Below the pieces are notes generated by a model. That model was not told the origin of the DNA, ran no database searches, and saw only the letters and a program-made list of their open reading frames with translations. Of a stretch of DNA of 64,000 nucleotides, positions 2,197-60,952 are shown one piece after another; the stretch's first letter is position 1, and each line of letters begins with the position of its first letter. Source of the DNA: Octopus sinensis (taxonomy: Eukaryota); NCBI RefSeq assembly GCF_006345805.1, contig NC_043022.1, forward strand, positions 310,001 through 374,000, written 5' to 3'. The translations under genes were made by a program, and so were the position numbers.

Positions 2197-2459
2197 ATGA
2201 AGAAGCTTGTCTTTTTCTTACTTATTTTCGTTGTTGTTCTTTGGGAAACTGAAGGACAGTTGGTAACTGGGGGGAAGCCTTTGGTGTCGGGAGGACTGCC
2301 AGTGGGTAATGAAGAAGAGATTGTGACCGCAAAACCTTTAGAGGATGAAGAAGTTTCCGAGAGTGAAGATGTGTCAGTGACTGAAGCTCGACCGTCTCAT
2401 GATGCAGATGCAGGTAACTCAACATCGGAAGGGGAACGTCTTGCTGCGTCGCCAACTAA
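2197..2459 (+). CDS. EMI-EGF secreted protein exon 1: signal peptide (MKKLVFFLLIFVVVLWETEG) + acidic pro-region
   Basis: gccATG context; hydrophobic N-terminus; donor AA|GTGAGT at 2459/2460 (phase 2) fits phase-2 exon 5011. Confidence 0.75.
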
Positions 2460-3499
2460 GTGAGTCATTCTTTCATTCCACCCGATCTAACCTCGCAATC
2501 TACCCCGTGGGTACCTTTTGTACTGTCTGTTCTGTTATTCAAAATTTGCACTAAATATACGGTCTGGGGATTGTTAACGTTTTAGTCAAGATGGAGGACC
2601 TGAGCCGATAACACTTTACGGGACTTATAAGATTGATGGGAAGGAAGGACCCTAACCTTAAAGCTGGCAACAGAACATACTCAATGTACCTTAGTTACCC
2701 CAGTATTTATAATGCCATGATGAGGCACTTACAGAGACGGGAGAGAGAGACAGGCCATTGGACTCCTTATTTTTAGCCATTTATGAACACTGTCCTCATC
2801 AAATTCAGTTTGTATGTCCCACGAGGGTGTGACCAAATCTGTCTTTTGGTGTCATGAGTACAGCTTAAAATCCTTTTTCTTGAGTACGCACTCTTTGTGG
2901 TAAGGCAATTTGACGTCTATTTCTAGCGTATAAGAATCCACTTTAGTGGTCATTCACCTATTAATTGTAATACAATTTTTAAATCTTCAGATTTTTTTAA
3001 TATGATAGACCACTGGTTTAAATTGATGTTAATTGATTGATATCAAGTTCTACCCTCAGTATTTTAATTTAAAATAGCAATATTCTAAAACCAGTGAATT
3101 AACTGCGGAAATTTATTATCTGCTTGGGTTGTTTTCCGGCACTAGTGCGCCAAAATGAACACATTTGAAAAATACCACAAATATATTTTGTAGAACTGTG
3201 CAAGAGTTTTCTTTCGGGAAAACGTTTTTGTGTATAGTTCTGTATAATATGTTTTGAAATACGACAGACTACGCTGAGGATTTACAGATACTAGCATCTT
3301 GCATTTTGTAAGCATTAATAATGAAATCATGGTACAAAGGTAATCGTTTTATTTTGTCAATTTTCGTTTGCCTTTGGTTATTTTTTTACATTTTGACGTT
3401 TGCTGGTTTTTTTCTTGAGAACACACTCTTTGTGGTAAGGCGATTTGACGTCTATTTCTAGCGTATAGGAATCCACTTTAGTGGTCATTACTCTTATCA

Positions 3500-3690
3500 C
3501 TTATATATGATAGATCGGTAGCCACTACACACATTTTTTCTCTCCTTGTTTTTTTCTGTGTCCCTTTCTGTAGAAGAGCGTACGCTCGAAACATAAAAGA
3601 CTTTTTCAATTCCAGAGCGTAATACTAATACATCTGTTTGTTTTCTACACCACCTGTCTTCGTCTTTTATTGTTGTTTTTTTCGTGAACT
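3500..3690 (+). mobile_element. Penelope-like element terminal repeat fragment with hammerhead-like motif
   Basis: ctttCTGTAGAAgagc-gtac-gctcGAAACataaaag at 3564-3599, followed by (TA)n. Confidence 0.45.
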
Positions 3691-3705
3691 CTCGTTATAT
3701 ATATT

Positions 3706-3771
<66 letters not shown>

Positions 3772-4317
3772 CGTATCTATGTATGATGCCTATATATTTA
3801 TAAAGAGATTGCCTTTCATCCTTACAGGGTCGACAAATTAAGTACCAGTTACGCACTGGGGTCAATGTAATCGACTTAGTACCTTTGTCTGTCCTTGTGT
3901 GTCCCCTCTATGTTTAGCCCCTTGTGGGTAATAAAGAAATACATATATAAAGAGAGACAGAGACAGACAGACACACTGACTGATTGACAGACAGACAGAC
4001 AGACACACTGACTGATGCAGATATGGCTGTAGAATACAGATCTATGTGTCCGTCTCTCACTTGTATACGTGTGCTTCTCTCACTACCTCTACCTGTTTTT
4101 CTCTCTAGACACGAAAGCAAATGTGAGATTGAAGACGGGTGTTACATAAAAGAAACAAGAGACTCGCCGCACCCCTGCTTCCTCTCTGTCTGTGTCTCAC
4201 ACTCCATGTCTCTGTATCTCTCACTATAACCCCTCCTTCTCTCTCTTTCTCTAGTTGTATATGCGTGTCTCACTCACTACCTGAACCTCTTTTTCTCTCC
4301 TTCGAAAAAATTCATGA

Positions 4318-4635
4318 GGCGCAGGAGTGGCTGTGTGGCAAGTAGCTTGCTTATCAACCACATGGTTCCGGGTTCAGTCCCACTGCGTGGCATCTTGGGC
4401 AAGTGTCTTCTACTATAGCCTTGTGAGTGGATTTGGTAGACGGAAACTGAAAGAAGCCCGTCGTATATATGTATATATATATATATATGTGTTTGTGTGT
4501 GTGTTTGTGTGTCTGTGTTTGTGCTCCCTAGCATTGCTTGACAACCGATGCTGGTCTGTTTACGTCGCCGTCACTTAGCGGTTCGACAAAAGAGAACGAT
4601 AGAATAAGTACTGGGCTTACAAAGAATATGTTCTT
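4318..4635 (+). mobile_element. tRNA-head SINE family A (gcaggagtggctgtgtgg...gggttcagtccc); other copies 18566-18745(+), 23499-23915(+), 32658-32992(-), 48930-49160(-), 56040-56195(-)
   Basis: Multiple near-identical copies in the window; box A/B-like motifs; internal (TA)/(TG) tract. Confidence 0.8.
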
Positions 4636-4686
4636 TTCGTAACATATTTCTACTACATATATATATATATATATATAATACAATGT

Positions 4687-4985
4687 GAGGCGCAATGGGG
4701 CCCAGTGGTTCGGGCAGCGAACTCGCGGTCAGAGGATCGCGGTTGTTTCGATTCCCAGACCGGGCGTTGTTTGTGTGTTTATTGAGCGAAAACACCTAAA
4801 GCTCCACGAGGCTCCAGCTGGGGGTGGTGGTGACCCATGTTGTACTCTTTCGCCCCAACTTCCTGTTTTTTTTTTAGTAACGCTGCGTCCCATCCAGCTG
4901 GGGAACACATACGCCACAGAAACCGGGAAACCGGGCCCATGAGCCCTGCTAGGCTTGAAAATGGCGCATAAATAAATGTATGTAT
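4687..4985 (+). mobile_element. tRNA-head SINE family B (gaggcgcaatggcccagtggtt...ttcgattccc); copies 7735-8040(-), 19100-19395(-), 50035-50255(-), 53990-54195(-), 55714-55960(+), 56531-56810(+), 61555-61772(-)
   Basis: Recurrent sequence with tRNA-like box A/B. Confidence 0.78.
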
Positions 4986-5010
4986 AATTGCTATGTTGTT
5001 TGTTTTCCAG

Positions 5011-5100
5011 GAGAACGTGTAAAGTGAGTTGTGATAAAATTCTGGCGTACAAGAAACTACAAAGAGTAAAGTGCAAGTGGGGAACGTGTATAAGATACAG
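5011..5100 (+). CDS. EMI-EGF exon 2: (K)RTCKVSCDKILAYKKLQRVKCKWGTCIRY(S), N-half of EMI-like domain
   Basis: tttgttttccag| acceptor, |gtaaaa donor, 90 nt, phase 2-2, open Cys-rich frame. Confidence 0.75.
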
Positions 5101-5823
5101 GTAAAAACAAAACTACTCATTCCGGCCTTTATACATTTCCAAACAGAGTAAACATTCAGTACAATGGCATCCACAATAACATAATATCCTAAACTCGCAC
5201 CAATTATTCCCGCCTTTTCAGCTATTTTGGAACTTTTATATAAACATTCCTATTTATTTTATTTATTTCTTTATTTGCTCATATAAGGTCACAAATCAAA
5301 TTCAGAAGTTAATATTCTGGTTTTATTTTATATTTTAAATCTCTGTTTCTTATTTTCTGTACACAGAACATAATTTACATTATATATACGCTTAAAAGGT
5401 ATCTGATATTTGTGTGAGGGTATATATATGCATATATATATATATTGATAAAAACGGTAAAATAAAAGAAAGAAAGAGCCTCGATATTATGTAAATAGAG
5501 GGATTTATATATATATATATATATATATAATTCATCAAAAAGTGGCAGCATATTAAAATACATTTAAAGGTTTAAATGATAAACATCTTATAAACAAGAG
5601 CAAAAGAAAAATTATTTCCATGCCAATATTCTGATAACAGACTTTAAAATCGTCAGTTTCCATATATTATATACCACTACCAGCACGAAATCTCCGGACA
5701 ACCCAATATATATATATATATATATATAACAAATGGTTCATATTTGGTTGATTAAAAATCGGCACGAACTTTCGGGACAACCCAGTATATATATATAATA
5801 TATATATATAATATATTATATAT

Positions 5824-6150
5824 ATATTGGGTTGTCCCGAAAGTCGTGCCGATTTTATAATCACCAAATATGAACCATTTTGTTACAGAATGCGTCTCCA
5901 TCTCTCCTTTAACTTGAAAATACCCTCTTCCCAGAATTGGGGTGGTTTCATAGCAAAGAATTCATCAAGGTATCTTTTTACGTCATCCAAGGAATTGAAA
6001 TTTTTACCATTAAGACTATTCCGCAGAGACCTGAAGAAGTGAAAATCCGAAGGAGCAACATCTGGTGAATAGGGAGGGTGGGGTGACACATCCCAGCCGA
6101 GCTGCAGCAATTTTTGTCTGGTTCCTAAAGCATCATGTGCCGAAAATGAA
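5824..6150 (-). mobile_element. Mariner transposon relic: transposase C-terminus + one TIR
   Basis: ORF 5883-6110 has HPPYSPDVAPSDFHFFRSL (mariner YSPDLAPSD motif); TIR tattgggttgtcccgaaagtcgtgccgatttt next to (TA)n. Confidence 0.88.
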
Positions 6151-6540
6151 CCTTCTTATATTCCATTTTAAAGGGTTACAGAATTAACACAGGTTATAGG
6201 AACATAAACCTTCTTCCACGAAAAGATAGCTTAGACTGTGCTCTAAATGGAGGTGTAGTCAAATCCTATTTTATGGACTCAATCATTTTCTAAAATAAGT
6301 CGAAAGGTAAGCTGCTAGTAAATATATTTCGTTTTTGGATTTGGTTTGCAAGATTCTTTATGTGATTTCGTGTGTTGAAGCATGTTTTGTTGTGTCAAAA
6401 CTATTGAAAATGTTGCAAGATGCAACGTAAATTTTAGAAAATGAAGGAAGAAATGAGGGGAAATTTTACCGGTGAGTCTGTTAAATTATAAGGCACTAAA
6501 AGAGAATGACACTCCCCAGACACAATCGTGTATGTATGTA

Positions 6541-6621
<81 letters not shown>

Positions 6622-6675
6622 TAAACCATATATATATATATATATACATACACCACACACACACACACAACACAC

Positions 6676-6734
<59 letters not shown>

Positions 6735-6749
6735 AGAGAGAGAGAGAGA

Positions 6750-7065
6750 TGCGCCGAATTCCCACATCTTTCCATCATACCAATGCAAAGATTCAATCTC
6801 AGTACAAGAACGTCTAAACAAGGAAAACTTGTTCATACAGAAGTACAGACCACGCCTTAATATTCAAACGTGACCACTTCAAAACTTATTCTGAGGAGTT
6901 ATTTGTCCTCCTTGCCACCTGTTAACTCCCTCAGTTCACTCTCTAGACTCATTCTTATTTTTCAAGCATCCAAAATGGCGAGACCCCTTTGTCACAAGAA
7001 TTGATTACTTTACAATATCCCTTGAAATGTTAATTTAAATAGCGAAAACCGGTTGGATATCACTA
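6750..7065 (+). mobile_element. Penelope-like element 3' end: GIY-YIG C-terminus-like ...[21 protein letters not shown]-stop plus terminal repeat
   Basis: Peptide read at ~6805-6872 resembles the E-x-x-x-I-x-x-x-x-P-x-L-N end of GIY-YIG endonucleases; hammerhead-like fold at 7015-7060. Confidence 0.5.
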
Positions 7066-7172
7066 CATCTATAAAATATGTATATATTTTTTTTTAATTT
7101 CTTTATAAAAAGATAATGAACTATGTGAAACGAAGGCATTTCTCTTCCACTTTTTATGTTTTCCATCTATTT

Positions 7173-7233
<61 letters not shown>

Positions 7234-7239
<6 letters not shown>

Positions 7240-7670
7240 GAAGGTTTGAAAATGCAATTTTAAAAGATGTTTATTCACTTGACCGGTTTCACTCTTTTAG
7301 AAAAAGATTGTCAAAAGTAAAATGCAAAAGTTTTGTAAAAACTGTTGTGTTAAGTACTGGTTGTCACAAAATATTACAATACATATATACATTCTTTGAT
7401 AATAATAAGAAAATATCAAAGAATGTATATATTTTCAATGAACTTTTTAATATTTTCACAAGATTTTTCCTTGTAATCTGTTTTAACATTTTCTTATTAT
7501 TTTCAAAGAATGTATATATGTATTGTAATATTTTGAGACAACCAGTACCTAACACATCAAAGTTTTTACAAAACGTTTGCATTTTACTTTTGACGATCTT
7601 TTTCTAAAAAAGTGAAACCGGTCAAGTGAATAAACACCTTTTAAAATTGCATTTTCAAACCTTCTTTCAT
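7234..7670. mobile_element. MITE/foldback element with ~170-bp TIRs in (TA)n
   Basis: Left gaaagaaggtttgaaaatgcaattttaaaag... is the reverse complement of right ...cttttaaaattgcattttcaaaccttctttc; the same TIR recurs at 9040-9125. Confidence 0.8.
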
Positions 7671-8039
7671 ATATATATTTCCACTCGTGCAGTATATTAC
7701 AATTTCACTTTGTGATATATATATATATATATATATATCACATGACCAACCAGGCCATCAGATGTTGCTACACATCACTGGTCACAATGCGCTTCGCTTT
7801 GTTTTATCCTTCAAATGACGCCACCCCGCTGGCTAAGCGAGTAGGCTGACAGAAGAAAGAGTGAGAGAAAGTTGTGGCGAAAGAGTACAGCAGGGATCGC
7901 CACCATCCCCTGCCGGAGCCTCGTGGAGCTTTGGGTGTTTTCGCTCAATAAACACTCACAACACTCGGTCTGGGAATCGAAACTGCGATCCTACAACCGC
8001 GAGTCCGTTGCCCTAACCACTGGGCTATTGCGCCTCCAC

Positions 8040-8129
8040 ATATATATTATATATATATATATATATTATATATATATATATATATACATACATACATGAT
8101 ACATACATATATATACATATATATATATA

Positions 8130-8187
<58 letters not shown>

Positions 8188-8246
8188 TATATATATTTAT
8201 ATGTATATATATATATATAATATATATAAATATATATATATATAAA

Positions 8247-8277
<31 letters not shown>

Positions 8278-8337
8278 AATATATATATATATAAATTATA
8301 TATATATAAATATATATATATAAATATATATATATAA

Positions 8338-8400
<63 letters not shown>
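8040..8400. repeat. Long interrupted (TA)n microsatellite (similar tracts at 1125-1165, 1675-1760, 3695-3780, 6540-6735, 7175-7235, 43915-43970, 45565-45670)
   Basis: Direct inspection. Confidence 0.95.
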
Positions 8401-8401
<1 letters not shown>

Positions 8402-9377
8402 CAAAGTAGAGTTGTGGGGTCCCGCACGAGTGGAATTATATACGAATTATATACTGACCTGTCCGTTTTAGGAGGAGAAATCATTGATGCTTGAAGGAGA
8501 GACACAAAAAAAGAAAAAGGGTAAATTCTTTTCAGTTCCACATTTCTCCTCCTAAAACGGACAGGTCAGTTTTAGCTTCACCACTATTATAATGTAAATC
8601 TTTTTGAACTCATAATATTCTGTACGTGTATACTGAACTTTTTTAATAATTCCTTCTGGAAATTATCTTGAGATGTATAATGTATTTGTTGTAATCTTTT
8701 GTGCCCATTATTTCAATGAGCTTGTTAAACTTTTTTATATTCTCAACATGCTCTTGTCACCAAATAATGTATATTTATATGGATTGTAGTACTCTGTGTC
8801 AACCAATATTCTGTGCATGTTTGAATATACAGATACAATACCAGTATCAATTCCTTCTGGAAACTATCTTAAGCATGTCCTTGAGAACGATCATTTATGT
8901 AGTAATCTTTTGTGCCCAATATTTTAAGGAACTTGTTGAACTTTTTTATGTCCTTAACATGTCCCTGTTACCAAAGACTGTATATATGTAATGTAGCAAT
9001 TTGCAACAACCAATAATTAACGCAACCAAACTTCTACATGTTACTTTTGACAATCTTTTTCAAAGAGTGAAACCGGTAAAGTAAATAAATATCTTTTAAA
9101 TTGCATTTTCAAACCTTCTTTCGAATATATATATATATATATATATATTATATCTATATATATATATATATATAATATATATATACTAGCTATTCCACGT
9201 TTTCCAGTTGAATATTGCATCCATTACTATTGCACCAGCTAAGTGTGCCGCTAAGATGTGTGCGCATGCATGTTTGCTTCTGTGCTTGCGTGCTTGCGAG
9301 CGAGCATGTGTGTGTCTGAAACTGTTATCACTGTGTTCTGTTTATTCTGCTATTTTATTATTCTTTTTCTCTAACAG

Positions 9378-9454
9378 TACCAAATACAGGAGAATTCCTT
9401 CGATCTGTATCAGATGTTGTAAAGGATGGACTGGCGTGCCTGGAAGGTGCAGAG
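9378..9454 (+). CDS. EMI-EGF exon 3: TKYRRIPSICIRCCKGWTGVPGRCR, C-half of EMI-like domain
   Basis: ttctttttctctaacag| and |gtaagg; 77 nt, phase 2-1; CCxGW is the EMI C-terminal motif. Confidence 0.8.
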
Positions 9455-12052: not shown

Positions 12053-12811
12053 TTAAAATCCGGCAAACAATTTCTAGTGGGTTCAGGGTATGATGCCCAG
12101 GTTCATCAACATGATGGAAGTGCGGTAACTGTTGTTACAAAGAAGTTGAAATCTCTGCAAAAGAATTTGATAAGCTCAGAAAATATAAAGAATTCCGGAT
12201 CGAAATCGAAAAGAAGTGGCATCTCAAGACAGTTACATTACCTGTAATTGTAGGAGCAATTATTGTGTTTGCAACAGTGGATATACAATGGGACAACATG
12301 AATGTGTTGGTTTGTACAATACCAACGAATATATATATATATATATGTATGTTTTAATCAATATAGGGTAGCAAAAAATTCAATAGAAAAAATTTCTATT
12401 GAATATTTTGCTACCCTATATTGATTAATTAATGATTTTCTGACTAATTCTGAAATTAAATCAGCAGTTTATATTTGCTGCAGATAAGTTGGCGCGATTA
12501 CGGTGGTTTTGAAAATTTAGGGCAGATATTCTCTCGGCATAGACACTGCTGCCTCGTGTATATCTGCTCCTCCTGGCTTCTTTACCGATGAGACGAGCCA
12601 TTGGTAGATTGACTTGATTAAGTTTAATTTAATTTAATTAGGCTGGTTTGCCATTAAAAACGTCGAAACAATGCATTGTCTAAAAATGAAAGGGTAAATG
12701 TCTTTTAATTTTCCTTTGATTTCTGAATTACTACTACTTGGCGGTTTGTCTCCTGGCTGCTCTTTCTAGTGGTTCGAATGGCCTATTGAGGCCGTTCCTC
12801 AATGTTGTTGA

Positions 12812-17231: not shown

Positions 17232-17351
17232 ACATAAATGAATGTACATGGAGGGACCGATGCGGTACAAACGGTAGATGCAATAACACACTAGGATCTT
17301 ACAAATGTGTCTGTAACCGAGGATATCGTTGGGACGGAAGAACCTGTGTTG
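17232..17351 (+). CDS. cbEGF exon: DINECTWRDRCGTNGRCNNTLGSYKCVCNRGYRWDGRTCV
   Basis: ttttcag| and |gtaag, 120 nt, phase 1-1, DINEC..CxNxxGSY..CxC consensus. Confidence 0.92.
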
Positions 17352-17651: not shown

Positions 17652-17768
17652 ACATCAACGAGTGTGCAATGATACGTTTAATGCATCATTACAAGTGTTA
17701 CAACACACCAGGTTCTTTTTATATTGACTGCATGGAAGGATTCCAAATGATCAAGGAAAAATGTATAG
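17652..17768 (+). CDS. 4-Cys EGF-like exon: DINECAMIRLMHHYKCYNTPGSFYIDCMEGFQMIKEKCI
   Basis: AG/GT sites, 117 nt, phase 1-1. Confidence 0.88.
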
Positions 17769-18200: not shown

Positions 18201-18317
18201 ACATCAACGAGTGTGCAACGATACGTTTAATGCCTCATTACAAGTGTTACAACACACCAGGTTCTTTTTATATTGACTGCATGGAAGGATTCCAAAAGAT
18301 CAAGGAAAAGTGTATAG
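18201..18317 (+). CDS. 4-Cys EGF-like exon (duplicate): DINECATIRLMPHYKCYNTPGSFYIDCMEGFQKIKEKCI
   Basis: AG/GT sites, 117 nt, 4 nt differences from 17652-17768. Confidence 0.88.
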
Positions 18318-18849
18318 GTAAGTACTAAACAATAATAACGGTATTACAAGCATATAAGTCAGAGTGTGTGCACATACGTGTGTGTGTGTGTGCGCGGGTA
18401 CTTTTGTTACGTAGCTGATAAGTAAAAATAACAATTTAACATCCATGCTCGATGCTGGCATGTGTTGGACGGAAAGGTACGATCCGAAGGTGCTCAAGAT
18501 TGCTTTGCTTTTGTTTTTATGGGTTGATGCCGTTCCTAACAGGAACCATTTCACAGCATTTCACAGGCGCAGGAGTGACTGTGTGGTAGGTAGCCTGCTT
18601 ACTAACCACATGGCTCCGGCTTCAGTCCCACTGCGTGGCACCTTGACCAAGCGTCTTCTACTATAGCCTCGGGCCAACCAAGGCCTTGTGAGTGGATTTG
18701 GTAGACGGAAACTGAAAGAATCCCATCGTATATATGTATATATATATATATACATATATGTGTATGAAACAAATAAAAGAAAAAGAGAAGAAAAAAGAAT
18801 ATACTGTGTGTTTTTGGTAGCCTCGCTTGTGAGCTTGAAGCTAACTCTG

Positions 18850-19666: not shown

Positions 19667-19783
19667 ATATCAACGAGTGTTTAAGGAGACCGTGTCCTTC
19701 TCATGCCACATGTTACAACTACCCAGGTTCCTACATTTGTAAATGTGGACGAGGTTACCGATATAGGAATAACAAATGTCTTG
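19667..19783 (+). CDS. cbEGF exon: DINECLRRPCPSHATCYNYPGSYICKCGRGYRYRNNKCL
   Basis: attcag| and |gtaag, 117 nt, phase 1-1, six Cys. Confidence 0.92.
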
Positions 19784-20365: not shown

Positions 20366-21202
20366 TAAAAGTAAACATTTTAAAATCTCCTTGATTAATC
20401 AAATAGTTTGCCTTGGTTATTTAGCCCAAGGTCAGTAATGATCCAGTAGGTCTAAGGTATGTAGTTATTCAGCCGATCTAAGCAGAACGCCAGTTCTGTT
20501 ATTTCAAAGATACCACGAGTTTGATTAAACAAAGGGTCATACCGTACATCAAGGCATTGCCAGTTGCCTAGTGAGGTAATATGTACATGATATGCAGTGA
20601 CAGTAGTTAACTGATTTATAGCAGTCAATTGTATGCAGTAGAGTGCGGCATATAAAATAAACTTACAGTCGTTGATTGTATGTAGTTTAGTGTGACCGTG
20701 TTGACATGTTATACATCAAGACATATATATTTTTTTATTGCCCACAGGGGGGTAAACATAGAGAGAACAAACAAGGACAGACAAACGGATTAAGTCGATT
20801 AGATCGATCCCAGTGCATAACTGGTACTTATTTAATGGACCCCGAAAGGATGAAAAGCAAAGTCGACCTCGGCGGAATTTGAAGTCAGAACGTAATGGCA
20901 GACGAAATACCTATTTCAAGGGGCTAAACACAGAGGGGACAAACAAGGACAGACAAAGGGATTAAGTCGATTACATCGACCCCAGTGCGTAACTGGTACT
21001 TAATTTATCGACCCCGAAATGATGAAAGGCAAAGTCGACCTCGGCGGAATTCGAACTCAGAACGTAACGGCAGACGAAATACCACCAGGCAGTTCGCCCG
21101 GCGTGCTAACGATTCTATACATCAAGGCATATATTGGTTAATTGCTGCATTTGTATCTAAATAACAAACATTAATTAATGAAGTTTTAAAATTCTTCAAC
21201 AG

Positions 21203-21318
21203 ATATAAACGAGTGTAAATATAGAGGGCGCTTAACCATATATGTATCAATTCTCCCGGATCTTATGTTTGCCCTTGTCGAAAGGGCTTTGAATTATTTA
21301 ATAATCATTGTTGCGTTG
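21203..21318 (+). pseudogene. Disrupted cbEGF exon ([10 protein letters not shown][fs][28 protein letters not shown])
   Basis: 116 nt (sister exons 117); 1-nt frameshift near 21232; donor reads ATAAGT instead of GTAAGT. Confidence 0.8.
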
Positions 21319-21859
21319 ATAAGTTAATCCTTTCAATATATTTTAATACACACACACACACACACAACACACACACACAAGTACACAAATTCATCGTCTT
21401 CAATACCAACTTGAACAGCATCTCCTCCGTCCAGCAATCTATTATCAGAAAGCCCACTATCTCTTCCTTCTGATTTGTTTTTGCTATCTTTGATCCTAAA
21501 GGAGCCTTCTGTTTATACTCACAAATCTGTGCATTCTTCGCCCTATTCAGGCCATGCAAGGTTACTGTTTCTCCATTGTAATGTAACGTTACCATTACAT
21601 CAAAAGCCACCCACCTCCGTGCAGGCTTTGAACGTACTAAAATTTTCTTTAGTCCACATTTAATATATAGGAGGAAAAATACTCCACAGCTTTAGCAAGA
21701 TATGTCTGGATATTGAAAGAAACCACAACGCAACATAGCATCAAGTGGAGACTGCTAGAGAAGTGCAGACCTTCCAGTATATCAGTGGTAGGTGCAGTCT
21801 CTATATAACACATGAACGAAGTATATAGAATGAATCCGTTAGCCCAGGGACATACCATC

Positions 21860-23466: not shown

Positions 23467-23960
23467 ATATATATATATGTAGGCGCGTATACATATATGC
23501 ACAGGAGTGGCTGTGTAGTAAGTAGCTTGCTTACCAACCACATGGTTCTGGGTTAAGTCCCACTGCGTGGCACCTTGGGCAAGTGTCTTCTACTATAGCC
23601 TCGGGCTAACCAAAGCCTTATGAGTGGATTTGGTAGACGGAAACTGAAAGAAGTCCGTCGTATATATGTATATATATATTTATGTTTGTGTGTGTATATG
23701 TTTGTGTGTCTGTGTTTGTCCCTCCAACATCGCTTGACAACCAATGCTGGTGTGTTTACGTCCCCGTAACTTAGCGGTACGGCAAGAGAGACCGATAGAA
23801 TAAGTACTAGGCTGACAAAGAATAAGTCCTAAGGTCAATTTGCTCGACTAAAGGCGGTGTTCCAGCATGGCCACAGTCAAATGACTGAAACAAGTAAAAG
23901 AGTAAAGAGTAAGAGATTATATATTTGCTTTATGTTTGTTTATTTTCTCCCTTTTTTCAG

Positions 23961-23977
23961 GCATTGGCACCATCTGA
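23961..23977 (+). CDS. Probable terminal coding exon of EMI-EGF gene: (G)IGTI-stop
   Basis: ttttctcccttttttcag| acceptor; phase-1 frame gives GC ATT GGC ACC ATC TGA; AATAAA at 24001-24010 and 24425-24430. Confidence 0.55.
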
Positions 23978-24489
23978 AAGCTAAACCATTAGCGAGTCAA
24001 AATAAATAAAATTCTCCTCAACCGCAGCCGTCATGGATTCTAAACAACAGCCATAACAACAAATCTATCGACTATTACGATCCATTATATAACGCATTAT
24101 ATAATGTCCTCCTAGATACACATAGTCAAAATCCTCACTACCTGGTAATAAAACAACAAATACCGACTCATACAGGACATTGGAAACTTAATCACCGGTC
24201 AATATTAAAACGATCACGATGGGTCATCAATGTAGAGTAATCTCATTGGGTGGTCTCCATAAGACTAAGTTCATCTCTGTATTGCGTGACCACCTCAACA
24301 GGTTATCATAACACAAGATCCCGTGATGACAATCCCATCAACACACTGTCACTTATACATTACACCTTGCTGCGTATATTTTAAGTGTTTATGAATTAGT
24401 TAGCTTTATTAAATTAGTTAAATGAATAAAAATGTATTAAAAGTTATTGTGTTGATCTGTGAATATTAATCCTTCCTTTATAGATACAT

Positions 24490-25450
24490 GCATGTCTGTA
24501 TATATATATATATATATATATGCATGTATATATATGTATGTATATATGTATATATATATATGTAGGTATATAGGTATGTATATATGTATGTCTGTGTGTA
24601 TGTATGCATGTATGTATAAATATATGCATGTATGCATGCATGTTTTATATATGTATGTATATATGTATGTGTGTGTATATATATGCATGTATGCATATAT
24701 ATGCATTATGTATATATATAAGTATATATGTATGTATGCATGTATGTATATATGTATGTATGCAGGTATGCATGCATGTATGTATATATGTATGCATGTA
24801 TGTAGATATGTATGTATGCATGCATGTTTGTATATATGTATGTCTGTGTGTATTTATGCATGTATGTATATATGTATGTATGCAGGTATGCATGCATGTA
24901 TATATGTATGTATGATTGTATGTATGTATGCATGCATGTATATATATGTATGTATGCATGTATGTATATATGTATGTATGCAGGTATGCATGCATGTATG
25001 TATATATGTATGCATGTATGTAGATATGTATGTATGCATGCATGTTTGTATATATGTATGTCTGTGTGTATTTATGCATGTATGTATATATATATGTATG
25101 TAGTTATGCATGGATGTATGTATGTATATTTGTATGTATGTATGCAAGCATGTATGTATATATGTATGTATGATTGTATGTATGTATGCATGTATATATG
25201 TATGTATGCAGGTATTGATGCATGTATGTATGTATATATGTATATATGCATGTATGTATTTATATATGCATGTATGTATATATGCAGGTATGCATGTATG
25301 TATCTATGCATACATGCATATGTATGCATGCATGTATATATATGTATGTATATATGTATGTATGTATATATGCATGTCAATGTGCATGTATGCATGCAGG
25401 TATGCATTCATGTTTGTATGTATGTATGCATGCATGCAGGTATGTGTACA
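24490..25450. repeat. Complex (TATG/CATG/TA)n microsatellite with higher-order duplication
   Basis: Tetranucleotide mosaic; block gtatgtctgtgtgtatttatgcatg repeated at ~24838 and ~25056. Confidence 0.9.
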
Positions 25451-26202: not shown

Positions 26203-26823
26203 AGAAGTGACCGAGCTTGCCCGAGAGGGACGAAGACCGGTGGAAGTGACCGAGCTTGCCCGAGAGGGACAAAGACAGGCAGAAGTGACCGAGCTTGCCC
26301 GAGAGAAAGGAAGACCGGCGGAAGTGACAGAGCTTGCCCGAGAGGGACGAAGACCGGCGGAAGTGACCGAGCTTGCCCGAGAGAGGAAGACCGGCGGAAG
26401 TGACCGAGCTTGCCCGAGAGAGAGGAAGACCGGCGGAAGTGACTGAGCTTGTCCAAGAGGGACGAAGACCGGCGGAAGTGACCGAGCTTGCCCGAGAGGA
26501 CAAAGACAGGCGGAAGTGACCGAGCTTGCCCGAGAGGGACGAAGACCGGCGGAAGTGAGCGAGCTTGCCCGAGAGAGAGGAAGACCGGCGGAAGTGACCG
26601 AGCTTGCCCGAGAGAGGAAGACCGGCGGAAGTGACCGAGCTTGCCCGAGAGAGAGGAAGACCGGCGGAAGTGACTGAGCTTGTCCAAGAGGGACGAAGAC
26701 CGGCGGAAGTGACCGAGCTTGCCCGACAGAGAGGAAGACCGGCGGAAGTGACCAAGCTGCCCGAGAGGGATGAAGACCAGGGGAAGTAACCGAGCTGCCC
26801 GAGAAGGATGAAGACCGGCGGAA
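26203..26823 (+). repeat. GC-rich ~39-bp (37-39) minisatellite, ~16 units
   Basis: Unit gaagtgaccgagcttgcccgagagggacgaagaccggcg. Confidence 0.92.
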
Positions 26824-39111: not shown

Positions 39112-42100
39112 ATGAGGAAAGAATGAGGAAAGAATAAGGAAGGAATAAGGAAGGAATAAGGAAGGAATAAGGAAAGAATAAGGAAAGAATAAGGAAGGAA
39201 TAAGGAAGGAATAAGGAAGGAATAAGGAAGGAATAAGGAAGGAATAAGGAAGGAATAAGGAAGGAATAAGGAAAGAATGAGGAAAGAATGAGGAAAGAAT
39301 GAGGAAAGAATAAGGAAGGAATAAGGAAGGAATAAGGAAAGAATAAGGAAAGAATAAGGAAAGAATAAGGAAGGAATAAGGAAGGAATAAGGAAGGAATA
39401 AGGAAGGAATGAGGAAAGAATGAGGAAAGAATAAGGAAGGAATAAGGAAAGAATAAGGAAAGAATGAGGAAAGATGAGGAAAGAATAAGGAAAGAATAAG
39501 GAAAGAATAAGGAAAGAATAAGGAAAGAATAAGGAAGGAATAAGAAAGAATAAGGAAAGAATGAGAAAGAATGAGGAAAGAATAAGGAAGGAATAAGGAA
39601 AGAATGAGGAAAGAAGAGGAAAGAATAAGGAAGGAATAAGGAAAGAATGAGGAAAGAATGAGGAAAGAATAAGAAAGAATAAGGAAGGAATAAGGAAGGA
39701 ATGAGGAAAGAATAAGGAAAGAATGAGGAAGAATGAGGAAAGAATAAGGAGGAATAAGGAAGGAATGAGGAAAGAATAAGGAAAGAATAAGGAAGGAATA
39801 AGGAAAGAATAAGGAAAGAATAAGGAAGGAATAAGGAAGGAATAAGGAAGGAATAAGGAAGGAATGAGGAAAGAATGAGGAAAGAATAAGGAAGGAATAA
39901 GGAAAGAATAAGGAAAGAATGAGGAAAGAATAAGGAAAGAATAAGGAAGGAATAAGGAAAGAATAAGGAAAGAATAAGGAAGGAATAAGGAAGGAATAAG
40001 GAAGGAATAAGGAAGGAATGAGGAAAGAATGAGGAAAGAATAAGGAAGGAATAAGGAAAGAATAAGGAAAGAATGAGGAAAGAATAAGGAAGGAATAAGG
40101 AAAGAATAAGGAAAGAATGAGGAAAGAATGAGGAAAGAATAAGGAAGGAATAAGGAAAGAATGAGGAAAGAATAAGGAAGGAATAAGGAAAGAATGAGGA
40201 AAGAATGAGGAAAGAATAAGGAAAGAATAAGGAAGGAATAAGGAAGGAATGAGGAAAGAATAAGGAAGGAATGAGGAAAGAATGAGAAAGAATGAGGAAA
40301 GAATAAGGAAGGAAAGAATAAGGAAGAATAAGAAGGAATAAGGAAAGAATAAGGAAAGAATAAGGAAAGAATAGGAAAGAATAAGGAAGAATAAGGAAGG
40401 AATAAGGAAGGAATAAGGAAGGAATAAGGAAAGAATAAGGAAAGAATAAGGAAGGAATAAGGAAAGAATAAGGAAAGAATAAGGAAAGAATAAGGAAAGA
40501 ATAGGAAGAATAAGGAAAGAATAAGGAAGGAATAAGGAAAGAATAAGGAAAGAATAAGGAAGGAATAAGGAAGAATAAGGAAGAATAAGGAAGGAATAAG
40601 GAAAGAATAAGGAAAGAATAAGGAAAGAATAAGGAAGGAATAAGGAAGGAATAAGGAAGGAATAAGGAAAGAATAAGGAAAGAATAAGGAAGGAATAAGG
40701 AAGGAATAAGGAAAGAATAAGGAAGGAATAAGGAAGGAATAAGGAAGGAATAAGGAAGGAATAAGGAAAGAATAAGGAAGGAATAAGGAAGGAATAAGGA
40801 AAGAATAAGGAAAGAATAAGGAAAGAATAAGGAAGGAATAAGGAAGGAATAAGGAAAGAATAAGGAAAGAATGAGGAAAGAATAAGGAAAGAATGAGGAA
40901 GGAATAAGGAAAGAATAAGGAAAGAATAAGGAAAGAATAAGGAAGGAATAAGGAAAGAATAAGGAAGGAATAAGGAAGGAATAAGGAAAGAATAAGGAAG
41001 GAATAAGGAAAGAATAGGAAGGAATAAGGAAGGAATAAGGAGGAATAAGGAAAGAATAAGGAAAGAATAAGGAAAGAATAAGGAAGGAATAAGGAAGGAA
41101 TAAGGAAGGAATAAGGAAAGAATAGGAAGGAATAAGGAAGAATAAGGAAGAATAAGGAAAGAATAAGGAAGGAATAAGAAGGAATAAGGAAAGAATAAGG
41201 AAGGAATAAGGAAAGAATAGGAAAGAATAAGGAAGGAATAAGGAAGGAATAAGGAAGGAATAAGGAAAGAATAAGGAAGGAATAAGGAAAGAATAAGGAA
41301 GAATAAGGAAGGAATAAGGAAGGAATAAGGAAAGAATAAGGAAGGAATAAGGAAAGAATAAGGAAAGAATAAGGAAGGAATAAGGAAGGAATAAGGAAAG
41401 AATAAGGAAGAATAAGGAAGGAAAGAATAAGAAGGAATAAGGAAGAATAAGGAAAGAATAAGGAAAGAATAAGGAAGGAATAAGGAAAGAATAAGGAAAG
41501 AATAAGGAAAGAATAGGAAAGAATAAGGAAAGAATAGGAAAGAATAAGGAAGGATAAGGAAGGAATAAGGAAGGAATAAGGAAAGAATAAGGAAGGAATA
41601 AGGAAGAATAAGGAAAGAATAAGGAAGGAATAAGGAAGGAATAAGGAAAGAATAAGGAAGGAATAAGGAAAGAATAAGGAAAGAATAAGGAAGGAATAAG
41701 GAAGGAATAAGGAAGGAATAAGGAAAGAATAAGGAAGGAATAAGGAAAGAATAAGGAAAGAATAAGGAAGGAATAAGGAAGGAATAAGGAAGGAATAAGG
41801 AAAGAATAAGGAAGGAATAAGGAAGGAATAAGGAAAGAATAAGGAAAGAATAAGGAAGGAATAAGGAAGGAATAAGGAAGGAATAAGGAAAGAATAAGGA
41901 AAGAATAAGGAAAGAATAAGGAAAGAATAAGGAAAGAATAAGGAAAGAATAAGGAAGGAATAAGGAAAGAAAGGAAAGAATAAGGAAGAATAAGGAAGGA
42001 ATAAGGAAGGAATAAGAAAGAATAAGGAAAGAATAAGGAAAGAATAAGGAAGGAATAAGGAAGGAATAAGGAAGGAATAAGGAAAGAATAAGGAAGGAAT

Positions 42101-43831
42101 AAGGAAAGAATAAGGAAAGAATAAGGAAGGAATAAGGAAGGAATAAGGAAGGAATAAGGAAGGAATAAGGAAAGAATAAGGAAGGAATAAGGAAAGAATA
42201 AGGAAAGAATAAGGAAGGAATAAGGAAGGAATAAGGAAGGAATAAGGAAAGAATAAGGAAGGAATAAGGAAAGAATAAGGAAAGAATAAGGAAGGAATAA
42301 GGAAGGAATAAGGAAAGAATAAGGAAGGAATAAGGAAAGAATAAGGAAAGAATAAGGAAGGAATAAGGAAGGAATAAGGAAAGAATAAGGAAAGAATAAG
42401 GAAAGAATAAGGAAGGAATAAGGAAGGATAAGGAAAGAATAAGGAAGAATAAGGAAAGAATAAGGAAAGAATAAGGAAAGAATAAGGAAAGAATAAGGAA
42501 GGAATAAGGAAGGAATAAGGAAAGAATAAGGAAGGAATAAGAAGGAATAAGGAAAGATAAGGAAAGAATAAGGAAGGAATAAGGAAAGAATAAGGAAAGA
42601 ATAAGGAAGGAATAAGGAAAGAATAAGGAAGGAATAAGGAAAGAATAAGGAAAGAATAAGGAAGGAATAAGGAAGGAATAAGGAAAGAATAAGGAAAGAA
42701 TAAGGAAAGAATAAGGAAGGAATAAGGAAGGAATAAGGAAAGAATAAGGAAAGAATAAGGAAAGAATAAGGAAAGAATAAGGAAAGAATAAGGAAGGAAT
42801 AAGGAAGGAATAAGGAAAGAATAAGGAAAGAATAAGGAAAGAATAAGGAAAGAATAAGGAAAGAATAAGGAAAGAATAAGGAAAGAATAAGGAAGGAATA
42901 AGGAAGGAATAAGGAAAGAATAAGGAAGGAATAAGGAAAGAATAAGGAAAGAATAAGGAAGGAATAAGGAAGGAATAAGGAAGGAATAAGGAAAGAATAA
43001 GGAAAGAATAAGGAAGGAATAAGGAAAGAATAAGGAAGGAAAGAATAAGGAAGGAATAAGGAAGGAATAAGGAAGGAATAAGGAAAGAAAGGAAAGAATA
43101 AGGAAAGAATAAGGAAAGAATAAGGAAAGAATAAGGAAAGAATAAGGAAAGAATAAGGAAGGAATAAGGAAGGAATAAGGAAAGAATAAGGAAGGAATAA
43201 GGAAAGATAAGGAAGGAATAGGAAGGAATAAGGAGGAATAAGGAAAGAATAAGGAAAGAATAAGGAAGGAATAAGGAAGGAATGAGGAAGGAATGAGGAA
43301 AGAATGAGGAAAGAATGAGGAAAGAATGAGGAAAGAATGAGGAAAGAATGAGGAAAGAATGAGGAAAGAATGAGGAAAGAATGAGGAAAGAATGAGGAAA
43401 GAATGAGGAAAGAATGAGGAAGAATGAGGAAGAATGAGGAAAGAATGAGGAAAGAATGAGGAAAGAATGAGGAAAGAATGAGGAAAGAATGAGGAAAGAA
43501 TGAGGAAAGAATGAGGAAAGAATGAGGAAAGAATGAGGAAAGAATGAGGAAAGAATGAGGAAAGAATGAGGAAAGAATGAGGAAAGAATGAGGAAAGAAT
43601 GAGGAAAGAATAAGGAGGAATAAGGAAAGAATGAGGAAAGAATGAGGAAAGAATGAGGAAAGAATGAGGAAAGAATGAGGAAGAATGAGGAAAGAAGAGG
43701 AAAGAATGAGGAAAGAATGAGGAAAGAATGAGGAAAGAATGAGGAAAGAATGAGGAAAGAATGAGAAAGAATAAGGAAAGAATAAGGAAAGAATAAGGAA
43801 AGAATAAGGAAAGAATAGGAAAGAATAAGGA
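39112..43831. repeat. 4.7-kb 11-bp satellite (GGAAAGAATAA / GGAAGGAATAA / GGAAAGAATGA), roughly 430 units
   Basis: Direct inspection; length/11. Confidence 0.98.
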
Positions 43832-52023: not shown

Positions 52024-53249
52024 TTAAGCAATACAGCATCCAAATTTTGCAAGACCAATATTTTTTAGAAAAGATGTCCTGATCACCATCAGCCACCCTG
52101 GTTTGTCGTATTGATTGCAGTTTGGAAGAGAACCTAATAAATGAAAGCAAAACATCGTCTACACCAGCCAGAACAACTCCAAAGTCAAGGCAACGAGGGA
52201 GGCTCAACGAGAGTCATTGGTGAACTGCAGCTCACAGGACTTTCTGAATGACATGCCTAAGGAAAAATTACTCACTGACAGGAGGGAAGGACAACACCTA
52301 CTCTCCTATTTAGGGCCTCAGTGACAGGAGAGAGGAAGGGCAGTGTCTGTGACCCATCTTAGGGCCGCTCAGTGAGTGAAGGGAAGAAGGGTGATGCCAG
52401 TTAACAATTTTAGTGCTCCCATGACTGGAGGGAGGGACTGCCTTTGTGATCCTTTTCAGGGCTTCTGTGAATGGTAGAAGCAAGGGAATATTTTGTTTAG
52501 TTGTGTGGCCTGCTTGAAAAGCCATGTCCCATGCAGCCAGCTTCTTGAAAAAAGGCTGTTTGTAACTGCTTTACTTGGTCACTAAACCTGCTAGAAATAG
52601 AAGCCAAAGCCAAATCATATCCCTGCATCAAAACAGGATACATAGGAATCTGTATTAGTTCTTGGTATAAAAACAAATTGGAATGGTCACAACTGGAAAT
52701 ACTTTTGATCATATGTCTACAGGACCAGTGTTGACAAACCTTGAAATAACAACTGTTTGAAATATACTACGTTGCCACTGCCACCACCACTACAACCCAA
52801 ACCACTCCCGACGCCACCACCACCACCATTTCCTCCTCCAATTCTAACACCGGGTTTGCTGGTTTTCCAATGCAGTAACCTTCTAAATGACTCAACTGCT
52901 TCAAATACCTTGCAATACTACAGCAGCGGAACATTCTGCTGGTGCTCGGATATCTAACATGATAAATTTTTTAAAAATATGCGTCAACAAGGGAACTACT
53001 TATATATGATCAACTTCCTCCCCTAGTGTCTTGGAAATGGAGGATCACATTGAACAATGTGATCCTAGCCATTCCATATTCAAAAGAAGGACATGATGGT
53101 CATGTTTAGAATACCTTTGATCATACATGTGGCTTGTCTAGGACTGACCTGGGGCTAAACAACAACATAAGAAATATAAGTAAATAAATGACATCTCACA
53201 CCTCCTGGGTAAAAACAGAAAAAAACAAGCAAACAAGAGAAGCCCTTAC

Positions 53250-53528
53250 CTCTAGTTGCTCCAGTATGACTGGATTGCGGTCCTGATTGTCGGAGAGGTT
53301 CCGTTGCAAGCGCTCAATTTGAGCATTCAGTGTTTGGTTAACATGCTGCACATTCTGAAGACTAGACTGCACCTGAGACAGCTCTTCCTTCTTTCGCTGC
53401 AGTTCATCTGCAGTTGCATCACATTGCGATGCTTTCTGCTCAAGGCTCCCCTGTAATTGCTCCTGTTCAGTTGCCAGAGCTTTCTGTTGCCGCTTCAAGT
53501 TTTTGTTTTCTTTAATCTTCACACCAAT
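53250..53528 (-). CDS. GOLGA3: Golgin-160 coiled-coil exon
   Basis: ttgcag| and GAG|gtaagg; 279 nt, phase 0-0. Confidence 0.85.
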
Positions 53529-54219
53529 CTGCAATGAAGAAACAGATATATTTCAATAGCTACATCCATATATAGATATATAAATGAAGAAGAAGAAAAT
53601 GGAGATTTTGAAGTTAATAAGAGTTTATTATCAGCAACAAATCGATCATTATACCTTACAGCTGTTTCAGTTATAGACAGTGAAGTTAGTTAAATATTAA
53701 ATTCATATTTCTGAGCATAATCTCTTCAGAAGGGAAAAAATTTATCCTTAGATGTTTTGTGTATTTGTTTGAAGATTCATCACAGCAGACTGAGTGATAC
53801 TGTTTATGATTTATATTAATGTGTTTGGGCTGGGGGTTTGCAAGTTGGTTGGAGGTAAGATAAAGCAGGTAAATCGAATTGGTATTAAAAAGGGATAAGA
53901 ATCAGGGAAGCTATAAGAAAAATTGAATTCTATAGCAGCTTTTTGATTCCAAGAAAGACAATTCTAGCTAAACCTGCACAAATGATTTGTATCTAGTGAT
54001 CACTCCCTCCATCAAATCAACATGGTCTATACAGGTGTGCAAGGTGTGCCACACTTCAGGTGTCAAAGTGATCGTAGAGCATCATCATCATCATCAATGA
54101 AACTGAATGTTTTGCTCAAGTACACACTGAACCACTCAGTCCAGCATTAGAGCCCACAAACTCATGTAACACCCTAACCACAAGGCCATGTGCCCTCATA
54201 ATAAAAACAAAAGACTGAC

Positions 54220-58635: not shown

Positions 58636-58666
<31 letters not shown>

Positions 58667-60910: not shown

Positions 60911-60952
<42 letters not shown>

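Follow-up and report, generated by a model that had tools for sequence, protein, structure and literature searches.

Small secreted proteins of a predicted Octopus-only family, with acidic extension, basic EMI-like domain and cbEGF modules

The Octopus sinensis gene named 'LTBP2-like' in RefSeq ('fibulin-1-like' and 'ADGRE2' are other automatic names) belongs to an undescribed protein family, seen in Octopus alone, whose members are small and secreted and in which an acidic extension precedes a strongly basic EMI-like domain and a row of cbEGF modules. The acidic-then-basic charge pattern is real and conserved within the family, and there is in our judgement an even chance that the product is a lineage-specific extracellular binding protein of EGFL7 type, shielded in cis by its acidic part. 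The gene lies on the + strand at 2197-23977 of the window, i.e., of the whole 64,000-nucleotide stretch of DNA that was analysed, and exons 1-3 form its 5' portion.

When the exons of the model are joined, their translation matches exactly both RefSeq isoforms, XP_036369591.1 and XP_029651374.2. There are seven coding exons, the secreted product has 227 or 266 residues, and the borders of exons 1, 2 and 3 are canonical (AG/GT). The order of the domains is signal peptide, acidic 67-residue extension, hyper-basic 8-Cys domain and two or three cbEGF modules (Table 1). Intron 1 (2460-5010, phase-2) has the same position in the paralogue loci L002 and L003, which have the exon layout in common as well. 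Two EGF exons are found as remnants, one near 12250-12310, where the C-terminal half alone is left, and one at 21202-21320, which is frameshifted and has an AT donor.

Table 1. Positions in the window of the features of the octopus gene
Feature	Position	Strand	Description
Signal peptide	2197..2256	+	Residues 1-20 (MKKLVFFLLIFVVVLWETEG); predicted cut after Gly20, giving an N-terminal Gln
Acidic extension	2257..2457	+	Residues 21-87
Lys88-Arg89	2458..5014	+	AA 2458-2459 + G 5011 (across intron 1); AGA 5012-5014
Exon 1	2197-2459	+	Signal peptide, acidic extension and AA of the Lys88 codon
Exon 2	5011..5100	+	EMI-like basic 8-Cys domain, first half (RTCKVSCDKILAYKKLQRVKCKWGTCIRY)
Exon 3	9378..9454	+	EMI-like domain, second half (STKYRRIPSICIRCCKGWTGVPGRCR); Y-R-rich stretch and CCxGW motif
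Exon 4	17232..17351	+	cbEGF module 1; six Cys, DINEC motif, CxNxxGSYxC motif
Exon 5a	17652..17768	+	Isoform X1 only; cbEGF-derived module without Cys2 and Cys4
Exon 5b	18201..18317	+	Recent copy of exon 5a; nucleotide differences 4/117
Unused cbEGF exon	19667..19783	+	Intact, in-phase, AG/GT borders; in neither RefSeq isoform
Last coding exon	23961..23977	+	(G)IGTI and stop codon

The signal peptide, already proposed in the original prediction, was called from the n/h/c-region layout and the (–3,–1) rule, read off the sequence; it is of the classic type, residues 2-19 form a helix in the AF2 prediction, and it is kept across the paralogues, with 13-15 of 21 residues identical and TEGQ invariant. 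The same prediction had counted an acidic propiece of about 67 residues with some 15 D/E and 4 K/R, and a cationic block with some 15 K/R, 1 D and 8 Cys. Both counts turned out to be exact to the residue: there are 15 D/E and 4 K/R in residues 21-87 (67 aa; net –11, pI 4.1) and 15 K/R, 1 D and 8 Cys in residues 90-143 (54 aa; net +14, pI 10.0). Acidic and basic residues are sorted into the two blocks in a clearly non-random way (Fisher p = 6.7e-6). The asymmetry, whose presence in relatives had been put forward as a check, is kept in all five Octopus paralogues with a complete N-terminus, the propiece having a net charge of –5 to –82 and the domain of +11 to +18; the length of the acidic extension ranges among paralogues from 39 to 240 residues. 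With pLDDT < 50 over residues 19-94 (AF2), the acidic part is predicted to be disordered, and at residues 71-82 it carries a sequon motif, D-x-G-N-[SL]-T-x-(E)-G-E-x-L, whose NxT (N-glycosylation) motif is kept in 5/5 paralogues.

The basic domain resembles an EMI domain and seems nearest to the C-terminal half of that of EGFL7. It has about 53-54 residues in the window protein (52-54 across the family) with 8 Cys, and is predicted as a long beta-hairpin. Pfam EMI (PF07546; gathering cut-off 25 bits) gives no match to the window domain even at E <= 10, and none of five family members passes, the single match having E = 1.3. The domain was also compared with EMI exemplars (EGFL7 and EMILIN1), whose sequences are not database copies but are recognised by Pfam at about E 1e-18. 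Against these, hhalign gives a probability of 66-74% with a score of 27-28, which 0/200 shuffles reach (mean 10, maximum 20), and Smith-Waterman alignment with fixed Cys positions gives z = 5-7 in most pairs, as against z <= 3 for EGF controls. The top pairwise likeness is to the EGFL7 EMI domain (z up to 7.4; YRRxP...CCxGW...G[VL]PGxC), and the alignment to EMI is limited to the C-terminal half of the octopus domain, i.e., the exon 3 part. EMI domains are taken to have 6-7 Cys in a length of about 70-75 residues, the Cys order closing with CC-x-G-[WY]-x(n)-C; the Cys order and a CCKGW motif are present here, yet the loops are shortened and 8 Cys are packed into 53 residues. According to a review (PMC11990869), a protein with an EMI domain has a single one, placed at the N-terminus, and the EMI-like domain is likewise a single copy ahead of the cbEGFs, although preceded, unlike the known cases, by the 67-residue acidic extension. 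Of the EMI-EGF scaffold originally proposed, the cbEGF part is above the Pfam cut-off, whereas the EMI part is below the Pfam threshold and is recognised only in the comparison with exemplars.

In the cbEGF part, residues 144-182 match Pfam EGF_CA (PF07645) at 50.9 bits against a 27-bit cut-off, and cEGF and EGF_3 match too. Modules 5a and 5b still begin with DINEC but have 4 Cys only; since the two missing cysteines are precisely the partners of one disulfide, and the duplication of the module came after their loss, this looks like remodelling rather than decay. Among paralogues the net charge of the cbEGF part goes from +17 to –19. The full structure model matches EGF arrays only in the PDB, and the Pfam scan of the protein returns EGF-type families alone, with no TB (8-Cys) domain, fibulin-type C-terminal module or ZP. 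Tandem cbEGFs with D-x-N-E-C and Asn-hydroxylation-type motifs are common to fibulin, LTBP, fibrillin and ADGRE, but the octopus protein differs from fibulin, LTBP and ADGRE in having, by Pfam, no TB/8-Cys, fibulin-type C-terminal module, GAIN or 7TM. An LTBP or fibulin identity, as in the RefSeq names, was rejected on the absence of the first two, and the automatic names appear to reflect cbEGF similarity only.

Among known proteins, EGFL7 and EGFL8 are likewise small and secreted, with a signal peptide, one basic, Y-R-rich N-terminal EMI-type module and then EGF/cbEGF modules. In EGFL7, however, no acidic extension precedes the EMI domain (net +10), and compared with the latter the octopus domain is shorter by about 20 residues, has an extra Cys (8 Cys), fails Pfam EMI and is denser in charge (+0.27 vs +0.13 per residue); the octopus protein is also without a C-terminal coiled-coil region. 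With the EMI domains of EMILIN/multimerin (PF07546) the octopus domain shares the Cys order, a CCxG[WY] motif towards the end, basic residues directly ahead of Cys1 and a position before other modules, but it is below the Pfam threshold, its N-terminal half is unaligned, and neither gC1q nor coiled coil follows downstream. Molluscan EGFL/EGFZP proteins (Gigasin-2, LUSP-17) are small, secreted, tandem EGF-like proteins in lineage-specific families (PMC9290575). These shell-matrix proteins are defined by two EGF-like domains followed by ZP or a ZP-like domain (PMC9290575) and carry no EMI-like module, whereas the octopus protein is without ZP.

The exhaustive HMMER search of 1.84 billion representatives gave as its only matches the Octopus proteins P0003-P0006, with E from 2.6e-18 to 8.8e-13. 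With residues 1-143 as query, exhaustive phmmer returned Octopus paralogues and two spurious repeat proteins, and nothing else; profile searches added no relatives beyond that set and, as regards orthology to EGFL7/EGFL8, no EGFL7-like protein was found in either. The family comprises at least six paralogues, in Octopus species only, with a common layout of conserved signal peptide, acidic extension, N-glycosylation motif, basic 8-Cys domain and 2-5 or more cbEGF. Identity among paralogues is 62-71% in the signal peptide and 34-55% in the mature parts, and the first three exons of the window gene retain every family-invariant residue. Transcript and proteome records for the family were looked up, and genome contigs only were returned; the literature search found no paper citing the family accessions.

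As an EGFL7-type protein with an acidic shield, the product would be an extracellular, matricellular-type binding protein of the EGFL7/fibulin kind. Its basic EMI-like module may bind polyanions, e.g., acidic proteins or sulfated glycans, and the cbEGF modules may work as a calcium-stiffened spacer or interaction rod. The acidic extension would, in cis, shield the basic module electrostatically and keep it soluble along the secretory pathway. The Lys88-Arg89 pair before Cys1 would most simply be the usual basic N-terminal edge of EMI domains; alternatively, it could be a PC1/2-type convertase site in a regulated-secretion cell, where its cleavage, which is possible, would unmask the basic module. 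Counter to the matricellular reading, the signal peptide is highly conserved while the mature parts diverge fast, exons have been gained and have decayed, and the family is confined to one genus; this is the style of effector families (venom, immune, reproductive) and not that of core matrix proteins.

The protein might instead be a true pro-protein, from which a convertase cut after Lys88-Arg89 sheds a neutralising propiece and leaves a basic EMI-like/cbEGF effector (antimicrobial, venom, mucus, egg-protective). The Lys-Arg pair exists as predicted, being created by the splice junction AA/G AGA, and it should be accessible, because it lies in a predicted disordered stretch beside a folded domain. 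A basic cluster is found at this boundary in four of the five paralogues (KR, KR, RHRK and, in P0003, the furin-type RRSR), and in 4/5 the charges of propiece and domain roughly balance (–9/+14, –9/+16, –8/+16 and –5/+11). A signal peptide conserved above the mature parts and a one-genus restriction are both typical of effector families, and the predicted long cationic beta-hairpin fits membrane-active peptides. We nevertheless consider this unlikely. The dibasic site, whose conservation was another of the proposed checks, does not appear to be conserved: the boundary in P0006 reads RPPIV-C, and in P0009 the last residues of exon 1 are PP, with Pro at the Lys position. The furin consensus calls for Arg at P4, and the site of the window protein, SPTKR/T, is not furin-type by established convertase rules because Arg is missing from both P4 and P6. 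K/R make up 30% of the basic domain, therefore about five adjacent basic pairs are expected in it (three are seen), and the probability of >=2 basic residues among the five before Cys1 is ~0.47 at domain composition, so that the occurrence of KR is no more than chance at that composition. The EMI exemplars are likewise basic before Cys1 (RRVC in EGFL7, RHRNWC in EMILIN1), which is where the Pfam EMI match begins, and further dibasic pairs (KK102, RR122) fall within the 'mature' part. The basic motif ahead of Cys1 thus does not appear to stand as a cleavage site. Moreover, the part downstream of KR would be no small peptide but a multidomain product of 138-177 residues running into 2-3 cbEGFs, the P0003 propiece (–82) goes far beyond neutralisation, and the swing in cbEGF charge between paralogues also argues against a pro-protein. 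Searches of Pfam, PDB sequences and Foldseek gave no match to a defensin, knottin or toxin fold. Anionic-propiece precursors (alpha-defensin, cnidarian toxin) have the same order of signal peptide, acidic part, basic residues and cationic Cys-rich part, with charges roughly balanced, but the likeness of the octopus protein to them is at the level of composition only, its cleavage motif being apparently unconserved and its 'mature' part large, multidomain and without fold or sequence relation. Of the toxin/antimicrobial precursor likeness in the original prediction, the charge order holds and is kept in the family, whereas no link in fold or sequence was found and the mature part would not be a small peptide.

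Distinctly improbable is a bolder version, in which the EMI module would have been miniaturised, within this fast-evolving family, to a hyper-cationic beta-hairpin warhead, kept inert by the anionic propiece of variable length, released by a convertase at the exon-1/exon-2 boundary and tethered to cbEGFs as an effector (antimicrobial, venom or egg-protective). It seems very improbable, too, that the protein is a block polyampholyte material, with opposite blocks of neighbouring molecules and cbEGF calcium driving self-assembly or coacervation. The opposite charge blocks are kept in every paralogue, the acidic block is length-variable and repeat-expanded (240 residues in P0003, with 88 D/E and rich in S-x-D/E), and tandem EGF-like small secreted proteins are known in the shell matrix of other molluscs (PMC9290575); however, those molluscan EGFL/EGFZP proteins have the ZP or ZP-like domain missing here, Octopus has no mineralised shell, and in the window protein the acidic block has a mere 67 residues and no repeats. 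Candidate structures for such a material are an adhesive, egg-stalk cement and a statolith or stylet matrix, and the acidic block is possibly phosphorylated. Finally, we give very little credence to a decaying duplicate, whose charge pattern would be inherited baggage without present function: although two of five ancestral EGF exons are degraded, one intact exon is skipped and two modules are without Cys2 and Cys4, the reading frame is open, all used splice sites are canonical, RefSeq models two isoforms, the Cys loss followed by duplication is more like remodelling, and no family-invariant residue is lost from the first three exons.

No long-standing question is changed by this result, which corrects misleading automatic names and defines a new Octopus-only family with an unusual conserved layout, in which an acidic tail is followed by an EMI-like module, compact and hyper-basic, and by cbEGFs. 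If the protein were an effector, it would be a new scaffold among cephalopod secreted effectors, and if the warhead version were true, the first EMI domain recruited as a cationic effector. If, instead, the acidic tail serves as a mask, whether removable or acting in cis, the family would offer a tractable case of natural electrostatic autoinhibition of an extracellular binding module, and also an example of a matrix domain remodelled within a lineage-specific family.

The window gene lies on the Octopus sinensis chromosome CM016884.1. Its seven exons, joined, give exactly RefSeq XP_036369591.1 (isoform X1, 266 aa), and omission of the X1-only exon gives exactly XP_029651374.2 (isoform X2, 227 aa); both are labelled 'latent-transforming growth factor beta-binding protein 2-like'.

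Exons of the window gene, EGF exons outside both RefSeq isoforms, and other features of the window
Feature	Position	Strand	Remarks
Exon 1	2197-2459	+	canonical AG/GT borders
Exon 2	5011-5100	+	canonical AG/GT borders
Exon 3	9378-9454	+	canonical AG/GT borders
Coding exon (cbEGF)	17232-17351	+	canonical AG/GT borders
Coding exon (EGF-type module, X1 only)	17652-17768	+	canonical AG/GT borders
Coding exon (EGF-type module)	18201-18317	+	canonical AG/GT borders
Last coding exon	23961-23977	+	canonical AG/GT borders
EGF1 remnant	about 12250-12310		in intron of window gene; C-terminal half, matching P0004 EGF1
Intact six-Cys cbEGF exon (EGF4)	19667-19783		AG/GT borders, right phase; 67% identity to P0004 EGF4
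Decayed EGF5 exon	21202-21320		in intron; copy of P0004 EGF5; frameshifted, donor AT instead of GT
Interspersed repeats	4317-4634, 7852-8040, 18565-18755, 23467-23924		80-93% identity to copies in L002
Tandem repeats just 3' of the gene	24488-25445, 26204-26823		~1 kb ATGT-type microsatellite; 39-bp tandem repeat x16 (231-bp higher-order unit)
Satellite, 4.7 kb	39115-43831	+	purine-only; ~432 copies of an 11-bp unit
Long ORFs within 53196-62925	57557-58582, 58944-60074, 61963-62925	-	heptad-rich, coiled-coil-like

The window protein is a secreted protein built from modules: a disordered acidic block precedes an EMI-like basic block and calcium-binding EGF (cbEGF) modules, a layout kept in a genus-restricted family. 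A signal peptide of the classic type occupies residues 1-20 (MKK, a 13-residue hydrophobic core and ETEG), with an AF2 helix at residues 2-19. It is followed by an acidic extension (residues 21-87, including the stretch PLVSGGLPVGNEEEIVTAK) with 15 D/E and 4 K/R, a net charge of -11 and a pI of 4.1, and AF2, run with a shallow family alignment, predicts residues 19-94 to be disordered. The basic domain (residues 90-143) holds 15 K/R, a single Asp and eight Cys (net +14, pI 10.0), and the segregation of acidic and basic residues between the two blocks is highly non-random (Fisher p = 6.7e-6). The residue counts of the original prediction were thus all reproduced, and the Lys-Arg pair between the blocks does arise across the exon 1/2 junction, as it had proposed: a phase-2 intron (AA|G) interrupts the Lys88 codon, and the codon for Arg89 is the earliest to lie wholly in exon 2.

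When residues 1-143 were compared exhaustively, by HMMER, with 1.84 billion representative proteins, four real relatives emerged and no others, all of them from Octopus (E 2.6e-18 to 8.8e-13). The members are P0004 ('fibulin-1-like') and P0005 ('wall 2-like') from O. vulgaris, and P0006 ('ADGRE2'), P0003 (a partial model) and a sixth member, P0009 (an exon-1-only model), from O. bimaculoides. The relatives share 43-55% identity with the window protein and, O. vulgaris and O. sinensis being sibling species, are therefore paralogues; the true orthologues are either hidden within a 50% cluster or without annotation. P0006 is likewise treated as a paralogue, since the window and its O. bimaculoides locus (L002) have only interspersed repeats in common, several copies of which sit in introns of the window gene. 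The rest of the window yielded no further family genes, nor did the sequence flanking L002 and the P0005 locus (L003). Word-index protein searches returned only P0001, P0006 and P0009, and with the domain profile alone they gave no matches and missed the known paralogues too, so that they say little about absence. The encoding records found for P0002, P0005 and P0006 were all genomic contigs, none a transcript assembly; for P0001, P0004 and P0009 there was no entry.

The members follow one exon plan: signal peptide plus acidic part on exon 1, basic domain split between exons 2 and 3, and every EGF on a separate exon; the position of intron 1 is identical at L002 and L003. The signal peptide is near-identical across members (MKNLVLFLFVFVVGLWVTEGQ), with 13-15 of 21 residues the same as in the window protein. 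The acidic extension differs widely between members, both in length (39-240 residues) and in net charge (-5 to -82). Five of five members carry the motif D-x-G-N-[SL]-T-x-(E)-G-E-x-L, which includes an N-glycosylation sequon; the basic domain is a common block of 52-54 residues with eight Cys (net +11 to +18), and the number of cbEGF modules per member runs from two to five or more. The charge asymmetry, which the original prediction expected to see conserved, is kept across the paralogues and is therefore a family trait. In P0003, D/E/S-rich repeats (ESVDE-type units, residues about 60-290) lengthen the extension to ~240 residues (net -82); past exon 3 this model runs into intron sequence.

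As regards the identity of the basic domain, Pfam EMI gave no match for the window domain and no usable one for the five paralogue domains, of which a single one scored at all (E = 1.3), and the PDB returned EGF proteins only in a single-sequence search and no matches with the family profile. An EMI chain was sought in the PDB and none was found; no EMI structure has been solved (PMC11990869), so that EMI membership is beyond the reach of fold comparison. In the AF2 model, from the shallow family alignment, two strands pair into a long beta-hairpin (core pLDDT 81-86), and a small EGF-like turn comes after it. Foldseek gave no match below E = 1 for the domain-only model (pLDDT 68.5), and only EGF arrays of the PDB (uromodulin, NELL, Notch, CD97) for the full model (pLDDT 54).

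Sequences standing for the human EGFL7 and EMILIN1 EMI domains, which were not database copies, were used as exemplars, and Pfam recognises both as EMI (E = 2e-18 and 2e-19, respectively). Against these exemplars, hhalign with the five-member family alignment gave probabilities of 66-74% and scores of 27-28, which none of 200 shuffles per target attained (mean 10, maximum 20), and Smith-Waterman scores lay 5-7 SD above a null with fixed Cys positions (EGF-module controls, z <= 3). It is the C-terminal half that aligns (C-x-Y...Y-R-R-x-P...CC-x-G-W...G-[VL]-P-G-x-C); over the whole domain the Cys order is as in EMI, but with shorter loops and one extra Cys. These alignments show a likeness to EMI, and the domain is therefore classed as EMI-like, a compact and hyper-basic variant rather than an established member. 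The EMI-EGF scaffold originally proposed thus stands for its cbEGF part, residues 144-183 forming a complete cbEGF that Pfam EGF_CA scores at 50.9 bits (cut-off, 27 bits), and for its EMI part as a likeness.

The closest known proteins are EGFL7 and EGFL8, with which the order of signal peptide, EMI and EGF/cbEGF is shared. Unlike these, the octopus protein carries the acidic extension and a shortened, 8-Cys hyper-basic EMI-like module, and has no C-terminal coiled-coil region; there is no demonstrable orthology. The EGFL7 EMI is also basic (+10 in 75 residues), at half the charge density of the octopus domain. Judged by Pfam, membership of the LTBPs (no TB domain), the fibulins (no fibulin-C domain) and the ADGREs (no GAIN/7TM) was rejected, and because these domains are absent the annotated names mirror cbEGF similarity only. 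Shell-matrix EGFL membership was rejected as well: the molluscan EGFL/EGFZP proteins carry a ZP domain (PMC9290575), their defining feature, which is absent here and sets the octopus protein apart.

The two EGF-type exons arose by a recent duplication: they differ at 4 of 117 nt, and their splice-site flanks are near-identical over about 40 nt on the upstream side and about 25 nt on the downstream side. Both copies are present in X1, the second alone in X2. Both modules lack EGF Cys2 and Cys4, which form exactly one disulfide pair, so that the joint loss of these two Cys preceded the duplication. With the five cbEGFs of P0004 as reference, remnants of EGF1 and EGF5 were recognised in introns, together with an intact EGF4 exon that is absent from both RefSeq isoforms and may belong to an unannotated one. 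The family evolves quickly, via exon gain, loss and decay.

Elsewhere in the window, the satellite (unit AGGAAAGAATA, 92% match, GC skew 1.0) yields spurious ORFs of 1,600 codons on its minus strand. The long minus-strand ORFs further downstream, without a Pfam match, probably belong to an adjacent gene as its exons. An ARAGORN scan of the repeats in window 1-24000 found no tRNA-like gene.

The original prediction read this architecture as the precursor of a toxin or antimicrobial effector, released at the Lys-Arg pair from a neutralising propiece. The architecture stands, and several features fit such a reading: in four of five paralogues the extension roughly offsets the charge of the domain, the KR site should be accessible within the predicted disordered stretch, and evolution is effector-like, in that the signal peptide is conserved while the mature parts diverge and the family is restricted to one lineage. 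A boundary basic cluster is present in four of five paralogues, including a furin-type RRSR, but the motif is not conserved in form. The residues ahead of Cys1, the first Cys of the basic domain, are TKR-T-C in the window protein and P0004, RRSRG-L-C in P0003, RHRK-C in P0005 and RPPIV-C, with no basic pair, in P0006, and P0009 has PP at the end of its exon 1, at the position of the window's TK; a basic motif is thus common, but neither universal nor constant in form.

Convertases of the furin type recognise R-X-[K/R]-R, minimally R-X-X-R. Arg is missing from both P4 and P6 of the window site, SPTKR|T, which is hence not furin-type; the one remaining option is a simple dibasic site of the type used by PC1/PC2 in regulated secretion. 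The dipeptide by itself is unremarkable given the composition: at 30% K/R about 5 adjacent basic pairs are expected in the basic block and 3 are seen (KR88, KK102, RR122), and the probability of at least two basic residues among the five preceding Cys1 is ~0.47. The motif is alternatively explained by this composition and by the basic edge of EMI itself, since the exemplars are also basic right before Cys1 (RRVC in EGFL7, RHRNWC in EMILIN1), where the Pfam match starts. Moreover, the 'mature' product would be large and multidomain, the P0003 propiece has a net charge of -82, the cbEGF part ranges from +17 to -19 among paralogues, and no link to a defensin or toxin fold was found by Pfam, PDB sequence search or Foldseek. 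The precursor interpretation is thus supported in part, for its architecture but not for processing or effector function, and a toxin or antimicrobial product is improbable.

The reading preferred here is a protein that binds its partners outside the cell, much as EGFL7 and the fibulins do. These partners would be polyanionic and would attach to the basic EMI-like module, the cbEGFs would serve as a calcium-stiffened spacer, and the acidic extension would, in cis, shield electrostatically and keep in solution a module whose charge is +14 to +18; that the extension varies so much in length fits a bulk-charge role and not a precise fold. Later removal of this shield at KR in the window protein is possible, though less likely than not. 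The family was not found in the literature searched by accession, by annotated names, for octopus venom, mucus and antimicrobial peptides, and for cephalopods with EMI. A secreted EMI-like/cbEGF protein with an acidic N-terminal block, confined to an Octopus-only family, is a new form among the known EMI/cbEGF type.
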